Below are positions 7,952 through 57,711 of a DNA stretch of 64,000 bases, piece after piece. The stretch is taken from positions 372,001 through 436,000 of IMG/VR virus record IMGVR_UViG_3300018080_008436; one strand, 5' to 3'. The position numbers and the translations under genes were made by a program. Positions within the stretch are counted from its first letter, which is position 1, and each line of letters begins with the position of its first letter. The notes under the pieces were generated by a model. It ran no database searches. It worked only from the letters and a program-made list of their open reading frames with translations, and had not been told where the DNA came from.

Positions 7952-10654
7952 TTAACCATTTAACCATCTTGCTTCATATTCTTGTGAGAAGTCATTGCTA
8001 TCTGCATTGTAGTTTCTTCTCACTGATGTCAACCTATAAGGTAGATCATCCACATCTATAAACTGCAATGGGGTCGCTATTTCTTGCTGAACTCCAACAG
8101 TCTTAAAACTTATTCCTCGAATTGGTTGAAAAACTCTTTCTGCCAATCGATACATATGTGCTCTTGCAACATCAATATCCCCATACGCAGGCTGATCTAT
8201 CATAATTGGTTTCTTAAATAAGATCTTATTGTCTTTGTTCTTAGGTATAGTTGAAACCGCTATAAGATTTCTGGTATCTCTGTCCAAAGTAAATATACTA
8301 ATTAAGTTCGCCGTACTATCAAAAGTAACCTCAATATCTCTTTGGTCTAGAATTGTCGTTTTGTTAACATCTGTAGGATCAGAAGAGAAGTAATGATCTA
8401 TCACACCAGGTCCAAATGTGGCCTTATCATATCCGAGTAACCCTCCAGGCAATCTATCAATATGCATTGTACCATCAGCGTCAAAATATGTAAAAGCCTC
8501 AAATCTTTTCACGATTGTCATTATGCAGTCGAAAATTTTATCAGTTGATTTAAACCTCATCCTTGGGCTAGTAAAAGAATACCCTGAGGGTAAAAAGTAT
8601 TCTTCAATATTAGGAACCCAATCTTTTTGAAAGGAGCCGATCCCTGCTCTTTTAGCGAGATCTCTAACTGCATGATACCCAACCATTCCATCATAAAATG
8701 GACTGTTAACAACTGGAGTGTTTTGCAAAATATAGTTATAATCCTCACAAACAAGTGTTATTGTCTCTTTTCCTGGAACTTCATTTGTGCTAGTAGATAC
8801 AATAACCCCAGTAAATGTTTTTGTGAAATCTTTTGCCGTAGATGTATTGTCAGCATTCCACGTCCATCTTATATCTATGCCATACTGCCTTTGTTTTAAA
8901 GCATCATATTTTCCATTCTCATTATAGAGAACAACAGTAGCACTTTTCTTTATGTGGAAGAAGTCTGGTGCGGATGCTTCTTCTGTAATGTCTATTAAAT
9001 CTTCAGTAACTCCAACTGGGGAAAGTTTTCTAGGTTTCCTTGCTTGGACATCAACTCCTTTAAGTCTGAAGAAATATGGGGTTGCAGAATATCTAAGAGT
9101 TGTATTGTCCCAAACTTTATCATCTGGACGCATAAACAGAAGAAAGAAGTCAGTACCTTTCAAATTACCAATTGCTGGATCACCATATTTCTTAGCAAAT
9201 TCTTTCACGCTAATAAACAATGCACGACCTTCACGATGTAATCCAAATGCCGTAGGTGGTATATTATTGACAGTTTTGTTTATTCCCTCATCTCGGAAAG
9301 ACTCTGCATCAATGCCATATTGCTGTTCTTTAGTTATATTTTGTGGACCAGATGGCAGAAGACTTGTCGCCTCGCCAGTTGGATCACCAGTTTCATCTGC
9401 GGCTGAATATTGAATAATTTCAATTTTGGGATTGTTGGGATCGCCAAGAACAGGAGTCTCTTTTCTATCAACTATTGGGAAGGCCATCGCACTAAGTCTG
9501 GCAAAAGTCATTGGATAAGCGTAAACACTTGCCCTCATATTAGATCCATAAACTCTAATTTTGCCTTTGGCAATATTACATGGTTTTAATTTCCCCTTGT
9601 CATCCTTATTGCCAGTTCTAACAATTCTGGTGTAAATATAGTTGAAGTTATTTATTGTGACTACTAACCTCCCACCAATAGTCATAAACCCAACGTCGAT
9701 TCTCTTGTCGGTTGTTACCAAACGAGTAGACTCATGATCAATTACTCTACCTTGAACAGGAAACGCATTATTCCCGTAGTAGTCCATTAATCTAGGCAGT
9801 TCGTTAAGGCTCAAAACTAAATCAAATCGATCTTGATTGTTGTTCGAATCCACTCCCAAACTAATAATCCAGAATGTTTCATATTGAGCAGGATATGGGG
9901 GCCTTTCGCTCGTCTCTATTGTCACCCAGAATGGCATATTTTCTGTAAGGAAGTCGTCTGACTCCAACCCCCACCACAAACCATCTTGCACTTTACTTTG
10001 ATGGGGACAATCAAGAGTTCTTTTCTCTGGGGGTTGTTCATCAGTGCCAGTTTCGTCTGGTTGGCCAGGAGGTATGGGTTTAGCTGGAAATGAAGCGCCA
10101 AAATTTTGTAGGAATTCTTTGATTTCTGCGTCATCTGTTGTTCCATCTGTTTTCGCTTCTTTGTAGTTAGACATATTCCAGATTGGACCAACATATGTTG
10201 ACCCAGGCTCTGTATCTGGATCAATAGGCTCTCTATAAAGTGTATTATTTTTATTAGTGATATCTGTATAGTATGATGGAAAGTTTTGAGAATCCAATTT
10301 TTCTTCAATCGCCCCTGGAGTTTTTACTCCTTTTAAACTACATGGAGTCCAACTGATACGTCCATCTGCACTTGGAAGTGATGACCCAGCACTTGATGAA
10401 CCTGGAGTAATGTTGCTAAGATAATTGTCCACAAAGAATTTCTTTCTAGCTGGGAAACAAGCGGCAAAATCACTATTGTTGTCTTGAACCTGTTCCGTCA
10501 ACAATGGCTCAACATAAGGAGATTTATTAATAGCAGGCCAATGACGAGCAGTAATGTCAAAATTATACACTTGAGATTCCTGCACGACTTTGGGAAGCCT
10601 ATGCAATATTCTTACTAGTGGTGTTGCTATACCATAATTTTTGTTGTCAGCCAT
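7952..10654 (-). CDS. Putative baseplate hub / tail-tip protein
   Basis: 900 aa. The C-terminal half resembles hub proteins (FTGVIVS...ITLVCEDYNYILQ; YFDADGTMHI; YRLTSVRRNY). AGGAG RBS. Confidence 0.55.
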   Translation of the reverse strand: MADNKNYGIATPLVRILHRLPKVVQESQVYNFDITARHWPAINKSPYVEPLLTEQVQDNNSDFAACFPARKKFFVDNYLSNITPGSSSAGSSLPSADGRISWTPCSLKGVKTPGAIEEKLDSQNFPSYYTDITNKNNTLYREPIDPDTEPGSTYVGPIWNMSNYKEAKTDGTTDDAEIKEFLQNFGASFPAKPIPPGQPDETGTDEQPPEKRTLDCPHQSKVQDGLWWGLESDDFLTENMPFWVTIETSERPPYPAQYETFWIISLGVDSNNNQDRFDLVLSLNELPRLMDYYGNNAFPVQGRVIDHESTRLVTTDKRIDVGFMTIGGRLVVTINNFNYIYTRIVRTGNKDDKGKLKPCNIAKGKIRVYGSNMRASVYAYPMTFARLSAMAFPIVDRKETPVLGDPNNPKIEIIQYSAADETGDPTGEATSLLPSGPQNITKEQQYGIDAESFRDEGINKTVNNIPPTAFGLHREGRALFISVKEFAKKYGDPAIGNLKGTDFFLLFMRPDDKVWDNTTLRYSATPYFFRLKGVDVQARKPRKLSPVGVTEDLIDITEEASAPDFFHIKKSATVVLYNENGKYDALKQRQYGIDIRWTWNADNTSTAKDFTKTFTGVIVSTSTNEVPGKETITLVCEDYNYILQNTPVVNSPFYDGMVGYHAVRDLAKRAGIGSFQKDWVPNIEEYFLPSGYSFTSPRMRFKSTDKIFDCIMTIVKRFEAFTYFDADGTMHIDRLPGGLLGYDKATFGPGVIDHYFSSDPTDVNKTTILDQRDIEVTFDSTANLISIFTLDRDTRNLIAVSTIPKNKDNKILFKKPIMIDQPAYGDIDVARAHMYRLAERVFQPIRGISFKTVGVQQEIATPLQFIDVDDLPYRLTSVRRNYNADSNDFSQEYEARWLNG

Positions 10655-10662
10655 AATAACTC

Positions 10663-13386
10663 CTAGAAATTGTTACTCACCATCCAAGTTTGATTTGTGC
10701 CTTCGGATGAGCAAATCTTTCCATCATCGTCGTAATAAAAAATTCGGAAAACACCTGTATCATCTTCGTGAGCAGTTAATTTCTGCTTCTGTACTGGACC
10801 TGTATTTAGAGGTGTTGTTATTTGAGTATCAAACGTCTCTTGGATTAATTCTATAAAATTAGCGTCACTACCTGCTGTCGCACTCATAGCTTCATTTAAT
10901 AATGTCTCTGTTACAATCTTTGCTTGTATCCCTGTTTCAGTAATATAAAACAACAATCCGCCATCATATATCGCCGCCTCTCCATCTTTAGCAACAATTA
11001 TCTCAGATGAACCCCACTCTTCACCAGAAACCCTTGAAAAAATCATCCTTACTCCATCTAAAGAGTCGTAGAAAACGACGATAGAACCATCAGCAAGACG
11101 TTTCGAAGAAACAACACCAAAGTCCTCAATATTGTCTACAGTAAATTGAGCGACTCCAGTTGATTCTGAAACTATTGGGATGATCTTGTCTTCAAAGAAC
11201 CAATCAGAAAACTTAAAAGTAAAATTATCAACTACAGGATTTGGGTTGTAAGTTGGATTTTCAATTGCTGGTGGCCTCCAAAGAAAATCTTGCCTACTAT
11301 CTTCAGGAACACATGCAAAATTCTGATAACTCAAAGTCAATATATTAACAATAAAGACCCCAAGATATCGGCTTCCATTATCATAGCTAACGAAGAAAAT
11401 ATACATCTTCTCAGAAAGTTCGTCGTAAATAGAACAACAATATAGAGCGTTATCTAAAATCAATAATCCATATTGGTTATCTTTGTTAGTTTCGACTTTA
11501 TCGCTCAACTGTGGATTCCCCCAAAAATATCCACCATTCTTTGATCCAATAACGAATACTCCATTTTTTTCTGGCCACTCGGTTGCTCCAGAGTTACTAA
11601 CTGTTGATACAGAATTCTGAACAGTAAACCCCCTAAAACCCCTGCCCATAAAAATCATAAGCTCTTCATCACTAATAGAAAAGATATCAAAGAGTCTAGC
11701 ATTATCAATCACTTGGTTATTGTTGATATAGTCTATGTTAGCAGAATTAATTAATGGTCCCACATTTACATTAGGATTACTTATAATAATTGGGCCATCT
11801 CCTGTAGCGGCACTAATCATTACTCTTCTAGAATCAGTTCTTGAATATCTGCCAGTCATATATTCGTAAATAGGAGAAACAAGATTACCATCATAAGTAT
11901 ATAAATCTTTATTTTGTGTAACTCCTCCACCTCTCTCAAATCCTATGAGATTCATTTCACCATCTCCACATATGGTAGTCCCATAGTATTCTCCTTGAGA
12001 TCCCAAAGAAAATAATAACACATCATTTCCAGGAGGAATCTCTACCTCTAATAACTTTACTCTATCTTGCCCTGTGTCGAGAGCTATTGTAGAGTTAGTA
12101 CCTTTCGAGATAGAAGCTGTTGCAACCCAAGCAGATTCTCCAATAGAAATGTCATAATGTTTGGGGTATTCAGTATAACCTAAAGTTCCTCGTCTTATCG
12201 CTACATTTTTGCTCTCATAATCATAATAGAGAAGTAAATCTTCATTCGATAGGTAATAGTATGCTGATGAAATTCCAAAGATACCCTCAACAGTTCTCAT
12301 GAATATGATCGCGTTATCATTATCTGGGGCTTGATCTCCCAGCCCCCAATATCTACCCCCACATAATCCGAGTCTAGTTCCACTAGGGATATCTACTTTA
12401 AATTCAGGGGCCAACCAATAACCATCCAAACAAATTCTTACGTTGGTATCTCCTGGAGGAGGTGGTATGTCACTAACGTCAACAGAGTATATTCCATTTA
12501 GCGCCGTCCTTCTCTCTACAGGAGTTCTACTAAAAGTGGCGTAAACAGTATCTCCTACGTTAAAGTTTGTAGGCTCTTCAGTAAATCGGATTATTGCTTC
12601 ATATGACTCACCCTGAGTCCTATTTTGCACTCCAATCCTCTCAATTGGATAACTATCTCCATTTGAATTATGTATATACCAACCTTTATATTTGGAATAG
12701 AGTTTCCTGGGGTTACTATTTATGTCATGGGAATATTGATTCATAAACCTGTCATAGAAACTAATAAATTCTCTAGATCCCATGTTAAAATAACCTTGTC
12801 CATAAGTGGTTGCTATGTTTTCTCCAGTAACCTGAATTCTGATGGATTTTGAGCTTAGGTTTATTGCATTAATCTCTCCACCAAGGAACTGGGTCCGACT
12901 GTCTGACATGTACCACTCAACCGCTTTCCATGCCTTTTGTTGAGGGATTATATAATCTGGATCAGCATCTGGGTTGAATACATATGTCTTAGTAATATCA
13001 TTAATGTACACATCTATAATATGCCCTCCCTCCTGACCTATGATCTCAAAATATCTGTTATTTTGAACCACAAAACTACCAACCAATGCATCATCATGGA
13101 AGTTCGTTCTTGTTGATCTGCCACCTTGACTTATTTCCATTTTTATGTAAGAAGTATCTTCATCAAGCAGAAATTCATTATAGTCAGACTTATCTGCCGT
13201 ATCCATTGGAACCTCTTCTAAGGAAACAGTTCCCTCATCAACAGTCCTAACAATGACATATCGATTATTGTCACTATATATTTCACTCTGACTTGTTCCT
13301 GTTGTAATTGGATAGAACTCCCAATAATGACTCTCAGTAACGGCCATATCTGTATCAGGACTAGGCATGTCAATTGGATTTGGCAT
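10663..13386 (-). CDS. Putative tail structural protein
   Basis: 907-aa beta-rich ORF, TAATG-coupled to the upstream gene in the tail module. Confidence 0.5.
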   Translation of the reverse strand: MPNPIDMPSPDTDMAVTESHYWEFYPITTGTSQSEIYSDNNRYVIVRTVDEGTVSLEEVPMDTADKSDYNEFLLDEDTSYIKMEISQGGRSTRTNFHDDALVGSFVVQNNRYFEIIGQEGGHIIDVYINDITKTYVFNPDADPDYIIPQQKAWKAVEWYMSDSRTQFLGGEINAINLSSKSIRIQVTGENIATTYGQGYFNMGSREFISFYDRFMNQYSHDINSNPRKLYSKYKGWYIHNSNGDSYPIERIGVQNRTQGESYEAIIRFTEEPTNFNVGDTVYATFSRTPVERRTALNGIYSVDVSDIPPPPGDTNVRICLDGYWLAPEFKVDIPSGTRLGLCGGRYWGLGDQAPDNDNAIIFMRTVEGIFGISSAYYYLSNEDLLLYYDYESKNVAIRRGTLGYTEYPKHYDISIGESAWVATASISKGTNSTIALDTGQDRVKLLEVEIPPGNDVLLFSLGSQGEYYGTTICGDGEMNLIGFERGGGVTQNKDLYTYDGNLVSPIYEYMTGRYSRTDSRRVMISAATGDGPIIISNPNVNVGPLINSANIDYINNNQVIDNARLFDIFSISDEELMIFMGRGFRGFTVQNSVSTVSNSGATEWPEKNGVFVIGSKNGGYFWGNPQLSDKVETNKDNQYGLLILDNALYCCSIYDELSEKMYIFFVSYDNGSRYLGVFIVNILTLSYQNFACVPEDSRQDFLWRPPAIENPTYNPNPVVDNFTFKFSDWFFEDKIIPIVSESTGVAQFTVDNIEDFGVVSSKRLADGSIVVFYDSLDGVRMIFSRVSGEEWGSSEIIVAKDGEAAIYDGGLLFYITETGIQAKIVTETLLNEAMSATAGSDANFIELIQETFDTQITTPLNTGPVQKQKLTAHEDDTGVFRIFYYDDDGKICSSEGTNQTWMVSNNF

Positions 13387-22943: not shown

Positions 22944-23650
22944 TCATATTTCTCTCATCATTTTTGTTCCAGGCTTCATTGTTGACCTGGCCTCAGATTT
23001 GAATTTTTGTGCTTGCGCCTTAGCGTCCAATGCGGCATTCTTTACCCTTTTCATGTAATTATGTTTTTGAATCCATTTATAAGGTAAAGATGCAATATAC
23101 GTGGGAGTCCAGCCATATTCTTCAATAAAGCTGAGTTCCACAAGGTCTCTCATAATATCAGGATCTACAGCAGTTGTTATGGACCCCGTGCTCATAAAAT
23201 AGCCTAACAACTGCTCATCTATTTTTTTTCCTCTTCCTCGCTCAAATAAGTTATCTCATCATAGGCGTTGAGGATAGTTTCGGCAATCTCTGGAGCCAAA
23301 CTTTTAATAGATTTCTCTGTCACTCTAACAGGGACTTGATTACCTTTGTTGTCGGTTGCTGTCGCATCCCAACTATGAATCAATTGGACAAGTCGGTTCT
23401 CTTTGTATAACTTATAATTGAATCGACGGTTTCCTTCCCCGTCCAATTCAATCCCACCTTCTTGTAAGTCATTGTAAAGCCCCCAAGTCAACTGTTTCAT
23501 TTTAACAGTAATCTTCTTCAGCTTTTCCTTATCTTCATCTGTTAGGTCTTCAGAAGTTTTGAACTCTTGTTCTGAGTAGGATTGATAATGCAGTCCTATT
23601 TTTTTGTAGTAGATAATGACATCTACTGTGCTGTCTTCTTTGATAAACAT
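22944..23650 (-). CDS. Tail assembly chaperone G (23219-23650) and -1 frameshift product GT (to 22944)
   Basis: G ends GAA AAA AAA TAG. The -1 frame continues ATA GAT GAG CAG TTG TTA GGC into the 88-aa ORF with YGWTPTYIASLP, typical of the T part. Lies between tube and tape measure. Confidence 0.8.
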
Positions 23651-36855: not shown

Positions 36856-36889
36856 AAAGAAAACCCCTCCTACGAATGCAGGAGGGGTT
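36856..36889 (-). terminator. Intrinsic terminator of the suppressor-tRNA operon
   Basis: AACCCCTCCTGCA-TTCG-TAGGAGGGGTTTTCTTTT. Confidence 0.8.
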
Positions 36890-36895
36890 CCTATC

Positions 36896-37228
36896 TTACG
36901 CCAGTGGAAATCCTTTAAAGTATTGCTCACCTTGTTCTTTGGTCATCGGATAGAAGGCTACAGCAGTCCAGCCGAATTCTTCGGGATAGTAAGTGTCATA
37001 GAAGAAGCGCATTTTTACGCCATCTTCTTTGGCTTTCTCAACAATGAATTCGGCTCTTCTTTTCTTAGCCTGAACCATGACCAAAGTCTGATCATAATTC
37101 ACCCATTGTCCCATCCCTTCGTCCTATCCGTAGTCAAAGGTCAGCTTAGCCAAAGCATGAGCACCTTGGACTTTTCGCTGATCTCGACTAAGTTCAGATT
37201 TCGTCAATACAAAAACACACGTATCCAT
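36896..37228 (-). CDS. PTH2-like peptidyl-tRNA hydrolase with in-frame TAG at codon 35 (37124-37126)
   Basis: GGAGG RBS then MDTCVFVLTKSELSRDQRKVQGAHALAKLTFDYG*DEGMGQWVNYDQTLVMVQ...GWTAVAFYP...FKGFPLA. The QxxHA and TAVA..P motifs of the PTH2 family lie on either side of the TAG. Confidence 0.75.
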
Positions 37229-37229
37229 C

Positions 37230-37607
37230 TTAGTCCTCCAATCCAGGAATGGTTAAATTGTAGTCAGACAGGATCTTCTTAAGCTCTCGAACGGCGAAAG
37301 AGTTTTCCCATCGTTCTCCACTAAAATCCGTAAGGAATTCCTGGTCAGACTCATAAGAGCCAGTATGGGGGCGATTATGGCGAAGACGATTGTGGATGAT
37401 ATGACAAACAGTGATCCATCCACTACCAGCATAACGATGCTTTTCAAAACCTTTTTTGAAATCTTCGCGTTGTTCTTTGGAGGATTCGTACTTACCATCG
37501 TTCTCAGTAATGTATCCAACGATACAACCTTTGAGATAATCGATAGCTTTTCTTTGGGCGAGTTCTTCTTCGGACAGGATTGGTTGTTCTTTAACTTCAG
37601 TAGTCAT
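37230..37607 (-). CDS. Hypothetical protein of the suppressor-tRNA operon
   Basis: 125 aa, AAGGAG RBS, His/Arg-rich CHIIHNRLRHNRPH. Confidence 0.7.
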   Translation of the reverse strand: MTTEVKEQPILSEEELAQRKAIDYLKGCIVGYITENDGKYESSKEQREDFKKGFEKHRYAGSGWITVCHIIHNRLRHNRPHTGSYESDQEFLTDFSGERWENSFAVRELKKILSDYNLTIPGLED

Positions 37608-37674
37608 TTTTAGTTCTCCTTAATTTGATTTGACTATCTTTCATTACTTCTTTTGAACGAAAACGATAACCAAC

Positions 37675-37731
37675 TCAAGGAGGACCTCGAATTACCTACG
37701 TGAAACCTTTAATTGTAAGAACCTATGTCAT
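37675..37731 (-). CDS. Putative leader/arrest peptide MT*VLTIKGFT*VIRGPP (two in-frame TAG)
   Basis: AAGGATAAGGT-ATG ACA TAG GTT CTT ACA ATT AAA GGT TTC ACG TAG GTA ATT CGA GGT CCT CCT TGA, 16 nt after the tRNA CCA. Confidence 0.6.
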
Positions 37732-37747
37732 ACCTTATCCTTTTTTT

Positions 37748-37822
37748 TGGTGCCCCTGCTGGGACTCGAACCCAGATTAGCAAGGTTAGAGCTTGCCGCT
37801 TTTGCCTTTAAGCTACAGAAGC
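37748..37822 (-). tRNA. Amber suppressor tRNA, anticodon CUA
   Basis: 75-nt cloverleaf GCTTCTG TA GCTT AAAGGCAA AAGC G GCAAG CT-CTA-AC CTTGC TAAT CTGGG TTCGAGT CCCAG CAGGGGC A CCA; anticodon at 37787-37789. Confidence 0.9.
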
Positions 37823-37836
37823 ATCTTCTACAGCCT

Positions 37837-37864
37837 ATTATAACTCATGATTACTTGTTGTCAA
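37837..37864 (-). promoter_or_regulatory. Consensus sigma70/sigmaA promoter for the tRNA operon
   Basis: TTGACA (37859-37864), 16-nt spacer, TATAAT (37837-37842). Confidence 0.85.
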
Positions 37865-39102: not shown

Positions 39103-40578
39103 TTAAGCTCCATTTAACTCCATGATTCTTTTATAGACATTATCTATGGCCTGATCCCAGGTGTAGAACTCTTCTAAATCTGACCTTAAATTATCAGCTT
39201 TGTCCAAAGAATCCTCGTAGTTTTCAAACACATATCTCATATGTGCTTTAGTTTCTTCAATCGCATTCCTTCCAAAATTTGGGAAGGTTTGGTCTTCATA
39301 AAAACGGCAGTGTTTTGCTAGTTTTCTCAGATGACCATTTGTTTCTGCTGTTACAAGACCGTCTGGTGCAACCATATATGCATTGCTGTCGTTTAAGAAA
39401 TCTGAATGACCAGAACAATCGCTTGCAATTACGGGCATTCCACTTGCTCCAGCTTCTGCATATGGAAGTCCAAATCCCTCACCGCGAGAGATTAAAACAA
39501 AGGCATCAGCAGAACCATAGATATTGGGCATATACCTTTCTGGAATCTCGTTATCATACAAAGCGATATGAGGCAACTCATCATCACTTTTATTTATAGA
39601 TTCTCTAATTCCTGCGAAATCTTTCTGGATCTGGTTTTGATCATTAAAAGCTTCTGCTCTGGATACAAGAAGTAATGTGACATTGTCATCTGCCGAAAAT
39701 TCTTCCATAAATGCTTTTAGAAGTATGTCGTAACCTTTTCTATATCCCCATTTGAATACACTTAGAAAGACAAAATCATTTAACTCCTGATTGAAATCGA
39801 AATCTTTTCTGTCAGGAGTGTATCTATCCACATCAACTCCTAAAGGCATAACCAAAACTGGGGGATGAACCCCATTTTGCTTAAACATTTCTTGAGCGAA
39901 TCTAGTTGGAACCCATATCTCATCAAAGAGATTAAGCTTCCCAACATAATCTGGATGCAGAGAACCAGAAGTTTCCATCATTGTGTAAAGAATTCTCCTT
40001 CCACCATGGAACATATTCAAAGGTATCGTAGCTCCAAATATTTTTGGGGCATTGTCAGCAATGGCTGTTCTACTCATTCTTCGAATTTGCTTCTCAGTTT
40101 CTTCATTCACATGAACATCTGACTCCTGAATATCAAGCTTAACTCTTAATCCTCTATTAGCAAGTCCAAATGCAAAGGCTCTATTCATTCGACTAAACCC
40201 TGCATAACTGGTGAAATGCCCGTACCAATGAACACTTGGGTTATTACTCAGGTCATAATTTATGTTGTAGGACTCTTGCACTTTTACCTCCCGTATAGGA
40301 ATTTTTTTGGGCTTTATCTCTCTACTCTCTTTAACTGTGGGTTTATGACCTTTTAAAGCATCATATTCTTCAATTAAAGACACTGTTCCATTTGACCCAT
40401 CCGATTCAATAACTACTGTTTGAAATTCTTGAGGGCCATCTGGATGCTTCCAACACTCAACAAAATCTGGCAGTTCAATATCTGGATCGTCATTTTCAGT
40501 ATTTAGAATCTTCATCTCTGGCTTTGGCACTATGACTCTTTCACATGCCAATTCATATGCCGACTTAATTTTTGACAT
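39103..40578 (-). CDS. Glycosyltransferase family 4 (GT-B)
   Basis: RKGYDILL and SRGEGFGLPYAEAGASGMPVIA motifs; likely start MSKIKS at 40578. Confidence 0.9.
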   Translation of the reverse strand: MSKIKSAYELACERVIVPKPEMKILNTENDDPDIELPDFVECWKHPDGPQEFQTVVIESDGSNGTVSLIEEYDALKGHKPTVKESREIKPKKIPIREVKVQESYNINYDLSNNPSVHWYGHFTSYAGFSRMNRAFAFGLANRGLRVKLDIQESDVHVNEETEKQIRRMSRTAIADNAPKIFGATIPLNMFHGGRRILYTMMETSGSLHPDYVGKLNLFDEIWVPTRFAQEMFKQNGVHPPVLVMPLGVDVDRYTPDRKDFDFNQELNDFVFLSVFKWGYRKGYDILLKAFMEEFSADDNVTLLLVSRAEAFNDQNQIQKDFAGIRESINKSDDELPHIALYDNEIPERYMPNIYGSADAFVLISRGEGFGLPYAEAGASGMPVIASDCSGHSDFLNDSNAYMVAPDGLVTAETNGHLRKLAKHCRFYEDQTFPNFGRNAIEETKAHMRYVFENYEDSLDKADNLRSDLEEFYTWDQAIDNVYKRIMELNGA

Positions 40579-40657
40579 AAGTAGAATTTGCATACCCTTT
40601 TGTGCATTATACATATTTTCAGGGTATAATTTAGTAAACCGCATAGGAGAACAGACA

Positions 40658-40981
40658 ATGAAAAGATGGGAAGCTGTAGGTAAAAATGATAGTGAGATCA
40701 ATGAAGATGACATCAATTGGGAGTTGGTAAAAAACAGAGTCAAGTCTCTCCAATTAAACAACAATGGTCAAATCATCCGTTTGCCTGACAATATGGAATA
40801 TATACAAGGGAAGACTGCCAGTGCCAATCTTATGGGTGGAAAAGTTCAGATTGAATCTAGGTATGTTGGCATAAAAGTTGGAAATAATATAGTTAAGATA
40901 CGAGTGGATGAAAAAACCAACGATATTTCCATAGAGGTAGAAGATGACCCCAATTACATACCTAATCCAAAACAGGACTAG
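40658..40981 (+). CDS. Hypothetical protein
   Basis: Start MKRWEA at 40658 after AGGAG; TATAAT upstream; divergent from the GT gene. Confidence 0.6.
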   Translation: MKRWEAVGKNDSEINEDDINWELVKNRVKSLQLNNNGQIIRLPDNMEYIQGKTASANLMGGKVQIESRYVGIKVGNNIVKIRVDEKTNDISIEVEDDPNYIPNPKQD

Positions 40982-41369
40982 AATTCCCATCAATACTTTG
41001 GATGCAAAGTCCTTAACATTTGGTATGGTGGCTCCAAACGAAACGGCCCAAACCAATATCGTACAGCTTTATGTACCAGATGCCGCCGCAATTACCAATA
41101 TTCGACTTGCATTAATCGATACTGGAGGTATAATGTTTGGATCTACTACTTTTGGAGTAGATAACAGATCGTTTATCGACAATAATGTAGTACCCGAATC
41201 ATTTTTTCAAGGTGTTAGCGACAAAAGCGTAAATTCGCCTTACAATATATCAGTAGCAAACCTAAATAGATTAGCCAGTGAGTACATATATCTGAATGTG
41301 GATATCCCAATTGGTCAAACTTTTATCGCTGGAACAATAAGATATCAATGGCTTTTTGACTATGCATAG
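40944..41369 (+). CDS. Hypothetical beta-rich protein
   Basis: 141 aa, GAGG RBS. Confidence 0.6.
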   Translation: MTPITYLIQNRTRIPINTLDAKSLTFGMVAPNETAQTNIVQLYVPDAAAITNIRLALIDTGGIMFGSTTFGVDNRSFIDNNVVPESFFQGVSDKSVNSPYNISVANLNRLASEYIYLNVDIPIGQTFIAGTIRYQWLFDYA

Positions 41370-41376
41370 GGGTAAT

Positions 41377-43383
41377 ATGAGAGTACAAATACAACCAACA
41401 AAAGACGAACAAGAGCTTTTTGAACTATTAAGGAATACAGTTAAGAAAGTGGCCCCTGGAACTTCATTAAGAGTTGCAGGCGGGTGGGTTCGTGACAATC
41501 TTCTAGGGAAGAAGTCAAATGACATTGATTTCATGGTTGACAACATGTCTGGAGAGCAAATTGCTCGATTAATCACAAATGAGCTTGGTCTAAGTGGACC
41601 CCATGTTGTTCAAGCAAACCCAGATGCCTCCAAACATTTGGAAACCGCTGGAGCAGAAATCCCCATATCAAATGGCAAGGTGTTTGATCTTGATTTTGCC
41701 ATCGCAAGACAAGAAATTTACCATGATGACTCAAGAATTCCTGAGATCAAACCAGCGACTCCAGAAGAAGACGCTTTCAGAAGGGATTTGACCATTAATT
41801 CTATGTTCTACAATATTATGACTGGAGAACTGGAAGATTTCACTGGAAGAGGAATGGAAGATCTTAAGAGTAGAACAATTAAAACTCCTGAAGACCCACT
41901 GAAAACATTCAAAGATGACCCTTTAAGAATTTTCAGAACTATTCGTTTCGCTTCAAGGTACAATGGTAATATTGACCCAGAAACACTTTCTGCTATGAAT
42001 AATCCAGAATTACATAGCGAAATTAGAGAAAAAGTGTCAAAAGAGAGGATTCAAGAGGAACTCTTCAAAACAATGAAGGGACCAAATCCTCTGATGGCCA
42101 TCAATTTGCTGAAAGAAACTGGCATATTCAGAGACATCATAGAAGATGCTGTCAAAGGTAGTAAATTTGAAGGAAAAATCGCTCCACTTGACATGGAGCA
42201 GAACAATCCTCATCATGAGCTAACGGTTTGGGGTCACACCCTAAAAGTTGTCGAAAATCTGTTGATGTACTATCCAGACACAGATCCTGAGAAACGTGCT
42301 ATCATGATCCTAACAGCGGTTATGCATGATTTAGGGAAGCTTTATTACGACATTCATGTCGATAAGGGGGATCAAACTTCTTACTATGGACATGCAGACG
42401 CTAGTGGTGAAATTGCTGAGATGATTATGCGTTACTTGAAGTTTAATAACAAAATGATTGATCAAGTCTCCAAGATGTCAAAGCATCATATGAGAGTTCA
42501 CTTGGTTGAAAATGACAAAAACTTAAGTGGCGAAGGAAAACGTTTGGCATTTTTCAGAAAATTTATTAGAAAGATGCTGGCTGAAGGTATCGATGCGATG
42601 GACATAATGAATCTTTCTATTGCTGATGCTTATAGCAAAGGTCACAAAATTGTTGATCCTTCAGTAGTTAAAAACTATCAACTTTTAAAAACTCAACTTG
42701 AGCAGGCTTTGGCTTCAATAAGTGTTGACCAAAATCAAAAGAAAGTTGTCCCAGTGTTGAATGGACGAGAAATTATGACTATTCTAAACATTAATCCTGG
42801 GTGCATGGTTGGTGATGCGACTAGATTTGTTTATGAGTTAATGGATGAGAATCCTAAAATCACCAAAGATGAGGCCGCAGAAAGATTAGTTGAAGAGTTC
42901 GCACACAAAATTGACAACGAAGAAAAAATTAGGCAAGCTTCTGCATGTCCAAAGCATCTTCTGTTTAGCAAGATTGATGAAATAAAAGAAGCGATTAATG
43001 ATGAGAATTGTGACAGAGCAATTACAATTATGACCACTCTCAAGAAAGAGAATGAAGATGACGAAAGTGTATATGCAGAAATTGCGAACCGTATGCTTGA
43101 TGTCTTGCTTATAGACCGTTCGAAAAGGAACTTTGAACTTCTAGGTTATGTATTTGACAAAGCAATAGATAACTTCTTTGATGTAGAAGTTTGCATACCT
43201 GTTCTTGGAATCTTGTTACTCTTAAAGACAGGTACAAAAGAAGAGCATATAGAAACATTATGTGAAAGAATGAAGAACATGGCGAATGATAAATTACAAG
43301 TCATGTTAAAGAAATTACCTGATGATGCTTATCATAAGAAATTCATAAAAAGGTTAAAGAATGGAAGATGTAACTGCAAATGA
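41377..43383 (+). CDS. cca: Class II CCA-adding tRNA nucleotidyltransferase with HD domain
   Basis: VAGGWVRD, DIDF, ARQEIYHDDSRIP loop, DAFRRDLTINSM, DDPLRIFRTIRFASR, VSKERIQEE, HT...MHDLGK. Confidence 0.9.
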   Translation: MRVQIQPTKDEQELFELLRNTVKKVAPGTSLRVAGGWVRDNLLGKKSNDIDFMVDNMSGEQIARLITNELGLSGPHVVQANPDASKHLETAGAEIPISNGKVFDLDFAIARQEIYHDDSRIPEIKPATPEEDAFRRDLTINSMFYNIMTGELEDFTGRGMEDLKSRTIKTPEDPLKTFKDDPLRIFRTIRFASRYNGNIDPETLSAMNNPELHSEIREKVSKERIQEELFKTMKGPNPLMAINLLKETGIFRDIIEDAVKGSKFEGKIAPLDMEQNNPHHELTVWGHTLKVVENLLMYYPDTDPEKRAIMILTAVMHDLGKLYYDIHVDKGDQTSYYGHADASGEIAEMIMRYLKFNNKMIDQVSKMSKHHMRVHLVENDKNLSGEGKRLAFFRKFIRKMLAEGIDAMDIMNLSIADAYSKGHKIVDPSVVKNYQLLKTQLEQALASISVDQNQKKVVPVLNGREIMTILNINPGCMVGDATRFVYELMDENPKITKDEAAERLVEEFAHKIDNEEKIRQASACPKHLLFSKIDEIKEAINDENCDRAITIMTTLKKENEDDESVYAEIANRMLDVLLIDRSKRNFELLGYVFDKAIDNFFDVEVCIPVLGILLLLKTGTKEEHIETLCERMKNMANDKLQVMLKKLPDDAYHKKFIKRLKNGRCNCK

Positions 43384-43969
43384 AGTCGCTTCATACGTTG
43401 AGGCATTAAATGTAGCCAATATGGATGGCGAGATAAAGAAACCAGAAGTGCTTGGAGTTTTGCAATCTCTTCCATCCCCAAATCACATCAAAAGATACTT
43501 ATCAAATGAAGAAGCAAGAGTCTTGTTTGAAAGCATCCGATGGATTTGGAAAGAAACAAGTGGTAAAGATATTAGTGAGACATTTAATTTCGAGCCTGCT
43601 CCAGAATCATTGCTAGGAAATTACTGGATGCTAAGGAATGGTCTGATCTTTCATGGTATCAACCATTATGGCATCATTAAAAGAAATATGACGCTCTTTT
43701 CTAACGTCCTGAAGTTAGAGCCGTTTGTACTGCATCAGAAGCTTGCAGGCATACCACAAGACCTAATTAAGTACGTTATAGACAATGGGGGGATGAGAAT
43801 CTTCGTTACGGCTGACAAAAGAGCATATTTCCAAATGAATGATCAGGTTTATGCCAATTGGGGTAGGGCCAAAGTTAAAGGACTGGACTTCGGAAACAAA
43901 GTGGTCAAACTTGTTGACCCCACTACCCGATTTGACGGTTGGAACTCTGGAATTACCTTAAAACTCTAG
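43361..43969 (+). CDS. Hypothetical protein
   Basis: 202-aa ORF overlapping the cca 3' end. Confidence 0.6.
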   Translation: MEDVTANEVASYVEALNVANMDGEIKKPEVLGVLQSLPSPNHIKRYLSNEEARVLFESIRWIWKETSGKDISETFNFEPAPESLLGNYWMLRNGLIFHGINHYGIIKRNMTLFSNVLKLEPFVLHQKLAGIPQDLIKYVIDNGGMRIFVTADKRAYFQMNDQVYANWGRAKVKGLDFGNKVVKLVDPTTRFDGWNSGITLKL

Positions 43970-48707: not shown

Positions 48708-49043
48708 CTATCTAAACTCATTTCCCCATTTGTCGAGGTTTTCGTATGGTATTGTAAACAAATAATCTTCAACTTTGCTTGAACGTGTCCCAAAAGAGAC
48801 ATCATAATATATCCCATCACATTTGACTAAAGCGTGGTTAACTCCATCCTTTCTACAAACAACAACATCTGCTTTGTATCCCGCTTCTCTTAATGCTTTG
48901 CAATACCTTCCACACAGATTACTGCAATCATTGGCATTGGGAATCTTCTTTTCTTTATTAAGTGACCAGAAAATATCTGGTAATGGTATTTTTTGAAAAT
49001 TTAGTAATTTGTATAAGAACGATTTGAACCATTTCATGATCAC
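48708..49043 (-). CDS. Transglutaminase/papain-like Cys protease domain protein
   Basis: DCSN...HALV...YYD (Cys-His-Asp). Confidence 0.5.
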   Translation of the reverse strand: MIMKWFKSFLYKLLNFQKIPLPDIFWSLNKEKKIPNANDCSNLCGRYCKALREAGYKADVVVCRKDGVNHALVKCDGIYYDVSFGTRSSKVEDYLFTIPYENLDKWGNEFR

Positions 49044-57600: not shown

Positions 57601-57711
57601 TTCTTCATCCTCTTCGTCACACTCTTCTTCTCCAGCGACAGCTTGCTTCAGAGCATTTCTAAGTTCGTCCTTAACGTTAACTTTTGCTACTGTAGAGGCT
57701 TCAGCAGTTTT
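54619..57711 (-). CDS. Scaffold-like protein with Zn ribbons and GVPR...GADNID repeats (likely C-terminal part of the protease gene)
   Basis: The frame is open from about 57711, with no ATG/GTG or RBS before the TTG at 57492; several CxxC pairs; C-terminal coiled coil before the capsid genes. Confidence 0.65.
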   Translation of the reverse strand, partial: KTAEASTVAKVNVKDELRNALKQAVAGEEECDEEDEECEEKEEKKETKEASTKAVVKNEKAKRDAEREEILASLESRKRVQAQEEILNPEKLDGADIVIETDFEELGSQKTSATFKKDIVKFAKGALATENMKLASITNVTIDGNTIQIAVQTDAGEESVEIPIGEEVAPIEEEIVPEGDLVGEGIEDGLDADIEMENLNQVAYNNKKMKRTAQSPMGGGMPGAAGEVAAPGAPEEGLDAPPMGEDPALQALTTGNEDELEDEIPTVGEKQAPWSICPECGSSDVDVTKEDDGGIIGNCQNCGAEYEALIKKEIEFRIIKPTKSVGEEGMEDVEGPEEPEEMPALPVAAQTRIDKDSIVRIAANREAHGDVCPACGNKKCDVIASGDGRTKCECGQCGTSFEKNLIVSSKNPSNGLLRVEWDLSPDNSCPECKEEARKFASKLKVVGMLKTAQANADTFPTANCVERIARTYGGNTVARFGPCKDKPLAECVCKELKRLGFTKVRQMKKLADTLMQVDPMDECIEDQKSKGHDVVQATSICNCIKKKFAKEESDNIYVQAFADEAKEGKIALSQYDLATMNELFIQKEENLAKKAQAILEEVEIGDDLEPLDSVDVEVDEIIEEPEEVAVESVTITGDNLEVVENTGDEALEEDIAEDVAFEAEEVPEGEDMETFDTDALAEALAMNSSRVRRSGAESNIKLAGKPKLIKTIEKDVEAGVPRSKATMMNEGADNIDVPMAKPQVPRSNATMGHEGADNINPPAGLPDVAVDSSYMGIEKATQSDMPAINNEIKGTVIAEAEKNLKEAQRQLALAKKMKEVDTVEGDVEAGVPRADASLGHEGADNIDVKMANPDVPRAKATMGQEGPDNIDVNAPKPDVPIDNAYMGVEKETQSDMPGINDKYLKQVQQKREEQLARIKEARKEEALRTASWLAANNRIASDKSTFDNVVTALAQFEVDKIASVAETMFPVKAVKTASTEQQVKTAGTGLPAIVIQSQPAQEPSFQDKIAGAFTIGSKLLNDNLIDNDQR

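Follow-up and report, generated by a model that had tools for sequence, protein, structure and literature searches.

Can a reading frame of 18 codons that is interrupted twice by TAG be of use to a phage in a genome region where TAG otherwise serves as a stop? The question is raised by a 64-kb stretch of DNA (positions 372,001 to 436,000 of the IMG/VR virus record IMGVR_UViG_3300018080_008436), hereafter the window, in whose numbering all positions are given. On the minus strand, like the genes around it, such a frame (the leader) lies between a tRNA gene with the anticodon CUA (tRNA-CUA) and a gene of 125 codons (gene 1), which is followed by a shorter one (gene 2). According to the original prediction, a reading of the same DNA by sequence, only ribosomes suppressing both ambers reach an R-G-P-P motif at the end of the leader, and their stalling there could control the downstream gene. 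The proposal is supported by the conservation in related phages of a frame with a coding pattern, of its TAGs and of the motif R(G/A)PP, by published data on RGPP arrest, and by the predicted sequestration of the Shine-Dalgarno (SD) sequence of gene 1. Judging from sequence comparison and RNA modelling, the element is likely an arrest leader gated by UAG suppression, in which an arrest core of the RAPP type (R-G-P-P) is preceded by one or two in-frame UAGs, and the stall would unmask the gene 1 SD. The leader is probably a natural sensor, by which the two genes that follow are turned on solely while UAG is decoded as an amino acid.

The features on which the argument turns are listed below; asterisks in peptide sequences denote stop codons, those inside the window leader being TAG.

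37748-37822, minus strand: tRNA gene, anticodon CUA (amber suppressor type), encoded CCA at 37750-37748 (ARAGORN; Rfam tRNA, 62 bits)
37738-37742, minus strand: AAGGA, ribosome-binding site (RBS) of the leader, 6 nucleotides (nt) 5' of the ATG
37675-37731, minus strand: leader frame, 18 codons and TGA, MT*VLTIKGFT*VIRGPP*
37731-37729, minus strand: ATG of the leader
37723-37725, minus strand: first putative gating TAG, codon 3
37696-37698, minus strand: second putative gating TAG, codon 12, context G-F-T-TAG-G; predicted to pair with ACUAC of gene 1 (helix B)
37678-37689, minus strand: R-G-P-P, candidate arrest core, CGA GGT CCT CCT; CCUCCU doubles as the predicted anti-SD strand (helix C)
37677-37675, minus strand: TGA stop of the leader
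37659-37674, minus strand: non-coding segment 3' of the leader stop; predicted by a duplex test to pair just upstream of the SD (helix D)
37616-37621, minus strand: SD of gene 1, AAGGAG, predicted to be sequestered in the free leader
37230-37607, minus strand: gene 1, 125 amino acids, ATG at 37607-37605, 67 nt beyond the end of the leader

The tRNA CCA, the AAGGA, the ATG, the TAGs at codons 3 and 12, the I-R-G-P-P-TGA end and the 67-nt gap are thus all present where the original prediction had placed them. The tRNA end and the leader ATG are separated by 16 nt (eight A's, AAGGA, six bases). No in-frame ATG, GTG or TTG occurs in the window leader 3' of either TAG, and its RGPP codons can therefore be reached only by readthrough of both.

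TAG is a rare codon in the window. The 28 genes called with confidence (14,980 codons) contain no internal TAG; seven TAGs (0.05% of the codons) are found in them, all at C-terminal ends. At this frequency, the probability of finding at least two TAGs in 17 codons is about 3e-5. Despite the tRNA-CUA of the phage, at least five genes end in TAG (57687-57689, 48708-48710, 43966-43968, 10663-10665 and 23219-23221, all on the minus strand). Genome-wide recoding of TAG, first suspected because of in-frame TAGs in long frames, was discarded, as those TAGs are C-terminal and real stops; recoding was judged on 64 of about 524 kb. The 12-kb neighbourhoods of the module in two relatives (L029 and L030) are likewise not TAG-recoded. 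Sense TAGs in the window are only the two found in the leader and one found in gene 2. Several of the TAG-ending genes feature additional in-frame stops a few codons further on, as the gene ending at 10663, where TAG, TAG and TAA occur within 17 codons; the extra stops may be a back-up against readthrough.

Conservation of the leader in related phages

The window comes from a huge phage that has not been cultivated; stretches identical to it occur on contigs of 296, 476 and 524 kb. Its sequence occurs in three sediment and seawater metagenomes, and the locus is identical, with no polymorphism, in contigs of three DNA runs. Among annotated phage genomes the locus had no match by Megablast, protein- and DNA-pattern scans of IMG/VR retrieved nothing beyond the phage of the window, and no relatives of gene 1 were found in reference bacterial and archaeal genomes. 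Relatives were sought with the gene 1 protein, which detected homologues at 33-54% identity, and then by a profile search with hidden Markov model E-values to 1e-11, which identified 74 clusters at 50% identity. Since the search relied on gene 1 homology, and not on the leader, the recovery of lineages was unbiased with respect to the latter. All 11 lineages reached by homology alone carry the leader (the window, L006, L008, L009, L021, L023, L024, L026, L027, L029, L030). A DNA pattern scan of metagenomes added four (L015, L018, L016, L020), for a total of 15 lineages; contigs L005 and L015 represent the same one. Three high-GC pattern matches (L013, L014, L019) have no ATG, RBS or phage context, and were set aside as chance matches. 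The leaders of the homology-found relatives read as follows.

L006: ML*IFKTGFT*GARGPP*
L008: ML*IFKSGFT*VARGPP*
L009: ML*IYKSGFT*GIRGPP*
L021: ML*ISRKLYLQEGFT*VARGPPQNT...
L023: MDKRDKL*IFARGPPW...
L024: MM*HYQFYEARGPPLT*
L026: MNKRLDKL*NHGFT*ARGPP*
L027: MNMM*TVNLIKTGFT*GARAPP*
L029: MNKFNKM*VFPSGFT*LRHARGPPLVR...
L030: MM*VEEGFT*NARGPPTMF...

Changes in the core follow the rules of coding sequences. In the nine homology-found lineages that were tabulated, three or four different bases are found at every third codon position of R-(G/A)-P-P. Arg is written as CGN or AGR, and the sole other change in a first or second position converts GGN to GCG (Gly to Ala). The core is RGPP in 14 lineages and RAPP in one (L027); the Arg, both Pro and a small second residue are invariant. 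AAGGA, GGAG or AAGG is located 6-10 nt 5' of the leader ATG in nearly all relatives. ATG, RBS and frame are kept though the spacing between the first TAG and the core varies by whole codons, from 3 to 15. By its substitution pattern, the leader frame is conserved in the manner of a translated sequence, and the conservation in 15 lineages is what the original prediction, which had proposed to look for it in related phages, anticipated. The leader is accordingly viewed below as a frame that ribosomes would translate.

The TAGs are as constant as the core. One TAG is found early in the frame in every lineage, each leader has one or two, no lineage has lost all of them, and none has TAA or TGA before the core. 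A purine follows 23 of the 24 leader TAGs, and the base behind the second TAG is invariably G in these leaders. The motif G-F-T-UAG-x-(A/I) precedes the core in 13 of the 15 lineages, the exceptions being L023 and L024. These two leaders have a single TAG; the double gate put forward in the original prediction holds for the window, not for the whole family.

After the two Pro, eight lineages have TGA or TAA and L016 has TAG, and a sense codon stands in this place in L005, L020, L021, L023, L024, L029 and L030; two sense codons separate the Pro pair from the stop in L024. Slow termination at a Pro-Pro-stop, to which the original prediction also appealed, was ruled out as a conserved feature, as the stop is missing or replaced across several lineages, and the conserved part is R(G/A)PP. 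Because the stop is not conserved, elongation arrest of the RAPP type, and not slow termination, is the process to be expected. RGPP and RAPP are the two strongest and most context-tolerant arrest cores, and resist EF-P; RGPP is also the most avoided tetrapeptide in bacterial proteomes, and the permitted variants of the core have been tabulated (PMC12992588). Arrest at RGPP and RAPP works in E. coli and B. subtilis systems, and arrest at RGPP is the most stable (Fujiwara et al.). In the RAPP stalled state, peptidyl-R-A-P-tRNA is in the P site, the Pro-tRNA accommodated in the A site is unable to attack, and a stop codon is not involved (Morici et al., Nat Commun 2024, PMC10951233). The phage leaders may stall ribosomes in the same way, with short nascent chains of 13-35 residues, lacking a hydrophobic signal and too short to emerge from the exit tunnel. 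RGPP, RAPP and GPP do not occur in the 14,980 codons of the window genes.

In 14 lineages, 54-79 nt separate the Pro-Pro codons from the ATG of gene 1; L030 has 136 nt. In one of the pattern-found lineages (L020) the frame is longer, and the downstream gene is unrelated to gene 1. A perfect sigma-70 promoter (12/12 matches, L020:1251-1278) lies there between the RGPP codons and the downstream gene, the SD of which would be partly excluded from the transcript; this lineage may use the leader differently. At L005:30-45, a single base turns the TGA of the L015 leader into TGT, and the frame continues into gene 1; the change may be a natural variant or an assembly error.

Pairing of the leader with the start of gene 1

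The folded segment of each leader began 20 nt 5' of its ATG and included the first 21 nt of gene 1. The original prediction had proposed to look for alternative structures over the AAGGAG, and pairing of the gene 1 SD with the region encoding R..PP is predicted in 15 of 15 leaders, with probabilities of 0.36-1.0. Four helices make up the predicted pair map. Helix A joins the G-F-T codons to gene 1 codons 4-6, helix B the second UAG with the two codons behind it to AUG-ACU-AC, helix C the Pro-Pro(-stop) codons to GGAG, and helix D the bases after the leader to those before the SD. An arrested ribosome was simulated by masking 30 nt, with the first Pro codon in the P site. Such a footprint raises the predicted accessibility of the SD in every leader; for the window, the probability of an unpaired SD moves from 0.02 to 0.58, and for L021 from 0.13 to 0.87. 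When the ribosome is placed at the first TAG, the predicted accessibility is unchanged.

As CCUCC is by nature an anti-SD sequence, two controls were made. In 8 of 8 leaders, masking of the SD by the natural RGPP codons exceeds the median for 384 synonymous recodings (ranks 1-28%); the combined p would be about 1e-3 were the leaders independent. Neither the peptide nor the SD constrains helix D, and its sequence is wholly different between lineages. Cognate partners pair at -7.8 kcal/mol, against -4.7 kcal/mol for non-cognate ones (p = 0.002), and none of 265 permutations of partners at the clade level reached the observed mean. Selection for pairing with the SD is supported by these two independent tests.

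A course of events may be proposed on these grounds. At rest, the mRNA would have the 3' two-thirds of its leader paired with the initiation region of gene 1, which would be off. The pairing would span from the G-F-T-UAG codons to a few bases past Pro-Pro, and the partner strand would begin about 16 nt 5' of the SD and end near codon 6 of gene 1. Most ribosomes translating the leader would be released by release factor 1 (RF1) at the first UAG, before touching the closing helices. Those getting past it may be released at the second, having opened helices A and B only. A ribosome arrested on RGPP would cover helices C and D, exposing the SD and the AUG of gene 1 for repeated initiation; the arrest would hence activate gene 1, rather than repress it. 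Gene 2 would be translated by coupling to gene 1, and would again require suppression, at its own UAG. The output would climb steeply with the efficiency of suppression, roughly as the square of it where two UAGs are present, and the element would report whether UAG is currently decoded in the infected cell. A chain of 13-35 residues, unlike those of SecM, MifM and ApdA, cannot be pulled from outside the tunnel, and the regulated step would therefore be the arrival at the arrest site, not the release from it.

Several observations weigh against this interpretation. On the window alone, the length of the frame and the single RGPP site are within chance, and frames of 18 codons are common if TAG is read as sense. 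In published work, a RAPP-like core alone was insufficient for arrest, and an adjacent N-terminal segment was required; the chain of the phage leaders would count just 13-35 residues, of which one or two would come from UAG codons. The 15 lineages are related, and combined p-values overstate their independence. The fold of the window leader is not unusually stable (z = -1.1), and with another 5' boundary the best fold is a local hairpin over the RGPP-stop codons, in which the SD is paired with codons 4-5. An SD equally masked is found in 4 of 33 window genes, and some pairing with the SD is expected for any CCU-CCN Pro-Pro pair, CCUCC being inherently anti-SD. Given the weak z-score and the frequency of masked SDs in the window, the structural claim is drawn from the comparative tests.

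The same sensor could have a transcriptional output. The segment at 37659-37674 carries a T-rich tract behind a weak hairpin (37694-37671), a terminator-like match lying exactly over the I-R-G-P-P-stop codons. The hairpin might be an attenuator, the formation of which would be prevented by the arrested ribosome, possibly in addition to the unmasking of the SD. A similar match occupies the same codons in L008, most lineages have a T-rich tract behind the leader, with some boundaries the fold of minimum free energy is the local hairpin, and a synthetic precedent, a UAG placed in the tna leader, acts through transcription. A transcriptional output is therefore possible, and would leave the sensing logic unchanged. 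The hairpins, of 6-10 bp including several G-U pairs, are however weak, other bases break up the T tracts, and no clear antiterminator was seen. By sequence inspection, the hairpin is disrupted where Arg is encoded by AGA (L006, L018, L020), and the scan found no terminator-like site in L006 or L020. Attenuation would moreover leave the long-range pairing of the SD and the covariation of helix D unneeded, and is regarded as unlikely. That the segment is an untranslated structured leader, in which GG..CCUCC is kept as an anti-SD or hairpin strand and TAGs and frame are incidental, is more improbable still. It would account for the conserved and covarying pairing with the SD, for the bias of the RGPP codons towards pairing, and for the fact that GGAUUCAC pairs with the gene 1 start too. 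It would not account for variation at third codon positions whether these fall in stem or loop, for the invariant CC of the first Pro codon, which is predicted to be in a loop, nor for the interchange of CGN and AGR, which breaks a predicted pair. The sole second-position change yields RAPP, the other known arrest core; RBS and ATG stay in frame across indels of whole codons, TAG is kept and is never replaced by TAA or TGA before the core, and no Rfam family, T-box included, matches the leader. T-box and other known riboregulators were rejected, since Rfam, searched at a permissive threshold (E up to 1), returned only the tRNA, and nothing in the leader.

A leader that arrests ribosomes could also act negatively, by recruiting cleavage or rescue factors that would destroy the mRNA or by titrating ribosomes, or could supply peptidyl-tRNA to the product of gene 2. 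Expression of gene 1 would in that case fall with suppression, or not depend on it. Gene 2 is PTH2-like, a leader of 17 codons has room for a second ribosome, so that collisions are conceivable, and readthrough followed by arrest limits expression in the mammalian AMD1 gene, in which a conserved arrest peptide lies beyond the stop codon (PMC13025110). Yet a default fold predicted to mask the SD and an arrested state predicted to open it are the architecture of activating leaders. Gene 2 requires suppression itself, and would therefore be made only when the leader is read through; L024 has leader and gene 1 without gene 2, hence the leader is not there to feed a PTH2. A negative or substrate-supplying role is about as improbable as the untranslated leader. 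For the window by itself chance could suffice: a rough estimate from base composition predicts about 0.5 RGPP-coding sites per 64 kb in six frames, and exactly one, that of the leader, is found. It is refuted by the comparative data, as the frame is conserved with a coding substitution pattern in 15 lineages, and the likelihood that the frame has no function is negligible.

The suppressor-type tRNA, gene 1, gene 2 and their surroundings

The leader lies in a transcription unit of about 1 kb, made in order by promoter, tRNA-CUA, leader, gene 1, gene 2 and terminator. The remaining features of the unit are the following.

37837-37864, minus strand: sigma-70-type promoter, TTGACA-16 nt-TATAAT, 12/12 matches
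36896-37228, minus strand: gene 2, 110 amino acids, PTH2-like, in-frame TAG at codon 35 (37126-37124)
36860-36891, minus strand: strong intrinsic terminator, 14-bp stem with 7 G-C pairs, T tail

Perfect consensus promoters are found also 5' of the tRNA-CUA in L006 and L008, and a terminator homologous to that of the window follows gene 2 in L006. The tRNA-CUA, which would be the suppressor acting on the leader, resides within about 1.2 kb of it in 12 of the 15 lineages; the others are represented by short contigs (L016, L027) or by one ending inside the leader (L005). In the window and in L006 the tRNA gene is directly 5' of the leader. Elsewhere the arrangement described in the original prediction, with the leader just after the tRNA CCA, is not kept: one or two small genes intervene in L008 and L009, a whole gene in L020, and in L024 (889-961) and L025 (1219-1291) the tRNA-CUA directly follows gene 1. 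The leader is always just before gene 1, while the position of the tRNA varies, and therefore belongs to gene 1 and not to the tRNA. In L024 and L025 the PTH2-like gene is absent, and a 757-residue DnaJ-domain protein is encoded next. The anticodon loop of the tRNA at L023:429-502 is reported as irregular by ARAGORN (anticodon 'ct'); in the alignment it reads CTA, with a G at position 37.

Gene 1 encodes a protein with the conserved, His/Arg-rich motif TVCHIIHNRLRHNRPHTxSYESDQ. Across the family of 74 related clusters H-I-(I/L)-H-N-R-x-R-H-x-(R/K)-P-H is invariant, and gene 1 is preceded by a UAG-gated leader in every case examined. The AlphaFold model is all-helical (predicted local distance difference test score, pLDDT, 86.6). 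Searches of Pfam and PHROGs with gene 1 gave nothing, the ESM Atlas returned unnamed viral clusters only, and the model had no fold match in the PDB.

The start of gene 2 abuts the stop of gene 1 (TAA-G-ATG), which suggests translational coupling. Its TAG is conserved at (F/Y/H)-x-(Y/H)-G-TAG-(D/E/V) in every lineage that has the gene, and the protein is well conserved on both sides; a sense TAG so conserved indicates that UAG is decoded in this operon. The C-terminal pieces of gene 2 match Pfam PF01981 (PTH2) weakly in four of six relatives (best E = 1e-4), and the piece from the window scores 16.3 bits, where the cut-off is 23. The pieces align to positions 42-114 of the 115 of the PTH2 profile, as expected if the TAG lies inside one domain, and two public gene calls also carry a weak PTH2 match. 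Profile searches of the gene 2 pieces against PDB sequences gave no match. The PTH2 invoked in the original prediction is therefore PTH2-like at best, with a conserved in-frame TAG, and the idea that it acts on the arrested peptidyl-tRNA is pure speculation.

Genes related to tRNA metabolism surround the unit. Histidine-phosphatase and 2',5'-RNA-ligase-like genes and large tRNA arrays are found in relatives, as in L030, where 15 tRNA genes form an array (8555-10226) 2 kb downstream of the module; tRNA-Gly genes are located just after gene 2 in L027 and L028. In the window, a plus-strand gene at 41341-43383, 3.5 kb from the tRNA-CUA, encodes the head domain of a CCA-adding enzyme/poly(A) polymerase, an RNA-binding region and an HD domain, and the guanine-cytosine skew flips locally over this plus-strand block. 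That gene 1 or gene 2 might take part in the decoding of UAG itself, as feedback, is an attractive idea. The four parts might then form a self-contained genetic-code switch, in which the leader measures the balance of suppressor tRNA and RF1, and gene 1, gene 2 or both feed back on it by antagonising RF1, stabilising the suppressor or limiting readthrough. A sharp change in the reading of UAG during infection, controlled by feedback, would result, in a huge phage with an otherwise standard code. This extension is possible, though doubtful.

Other features of the neighbourhood vary. In a 340-kb phage contig, the module of tRNA-CUA and leader has an IS605 OrfB/TnpB gene (Cas12f-like; L029:4458-5663) immediately upstream. 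The glycosyltransferase gene at L006:1-1834, homologous to window 39103-40764, hosts an intein (Hint, intein-splicing and LAGLIDADG matches), which the window copy lacks. The product of the minus-strand gene at 28083-29171 matches the Pfam family Volactin (actin/MreB-like) with E = 3e-63.

Relation to known leaders and meaning of the finding

To our knowledge, the RAPP-like arrest peptides identified so far are all cellular. The phage leader resembles them (ApdA, ApdP, ApcA, SecM, and the RAPP/RGPP peptides of Streptomyces lividans) in having the same core near the end of a small reading frame, co-directional with and just upstream of the gene that would be regulated, and in the expected output, the unmasking of a downstream SD. 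It differs from them in size and destination: known RAPP-like peptides are secreted or membrane proteins of about 100-200 residues, and the arrest is always reached, and released by pulling force or ligand. The phage leader has neither targeting signal nor release by force, and lacks the feature of a monitoring substrate. As in leaders of the secM-secA and ermCL-ermC type, pairing of its 3' part with the downstream initiation region is predicted, which a stalled ribosome would disrupt.

The leaders trpL, hisL and pheL report the level of one charged tRNA through the translation of special codons, which resets the mRNA structure controlling the downstream genes. These are runs of sense codons, scarcity of the tRNA slows the ribosome, and terminator and antiterminator hairpins provide the output. 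In the phage leader, in contrast, stop codons take this part, a release factor competes for them, an arrest motif would hold the ribosome, and the genes would be switched on by abundance of the tRNA. In prfB, the gene for RF2, a natural in-frame UGA senses termination against alternative decoding; +1 frameshifting takes place within a coding gene, and RF2 is what is sensed. The phage leader is similar in sensing through a stop codon, and differs in relying on a dedicated suppressor tRNA, a separate leader and arrest as readout.

The closest precedent is synthetic. As described in PMC6412442, an engineered UAG in the tna leader made downstream expression dependent on suppression by tRNA-CUA, through Rho-dependent termination (Liu, Qi, Yanofsky and Arkin 2011). 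The phage element is natural, has its own linked tRNA-CUA and a different arrest core, and usually two UAGs. The arrest peptide of AMD1, cited above, is located at the 3' end of a eukaryotic coding sequence, is reached by readthrough with near-cognate tRNAs, limits its own mRNA, and is unrelated in sequence to the phage leader. In phages with recoded stop codons, DNA in the standard code gives rise to the phage-encoded suppressor tRNA, and both code-change modules and a timing of gene expression by recoding have been proposed (Borges et al., bioRxiv 10.1101/2021.08.26.457843). The recoded stops of these phages are scattered in structural and lysis genes, and no cis-acting sensor is described; the visible part of the genome analyzed here follows the standard code, with sense TAGs confined to the leader and one gene beside the tRNA. 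The literature searched contained no natural arrest leader gated by UAG, nor a paper naming both RGPP and phage.

Known arrest peptides monitor export, membrane insertion, antibiotics and metabolites; the ribosome always reaches the arrest site, and regulation is exerted at release. If the interpretation of the leader as a UAG-gated arrest element is correct, it would be the first natural leader that reports a stop codon being read as sense, the regulated step being arrival, as well as the first arrest peptide of the RAPP type in phages, and the natural counterpart of the engineered UAG leader switch. Should the doubtful extension to a code switch hold as well, the leader would be a natural cis-acting sensor of the decoding state, and would add a new class of inputs to those of arrest peptides. 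The element is short and portable, and could serve as a compact readout of amber suppression. The finding points to two candidate effectors, the product of gene 1, present in 74 clusters and of no known fold, and a PTH2-like protein itself needing suppression, and bears on how phages endowed with suppressor tRNAs time or control a change of code inside a standard-code host.

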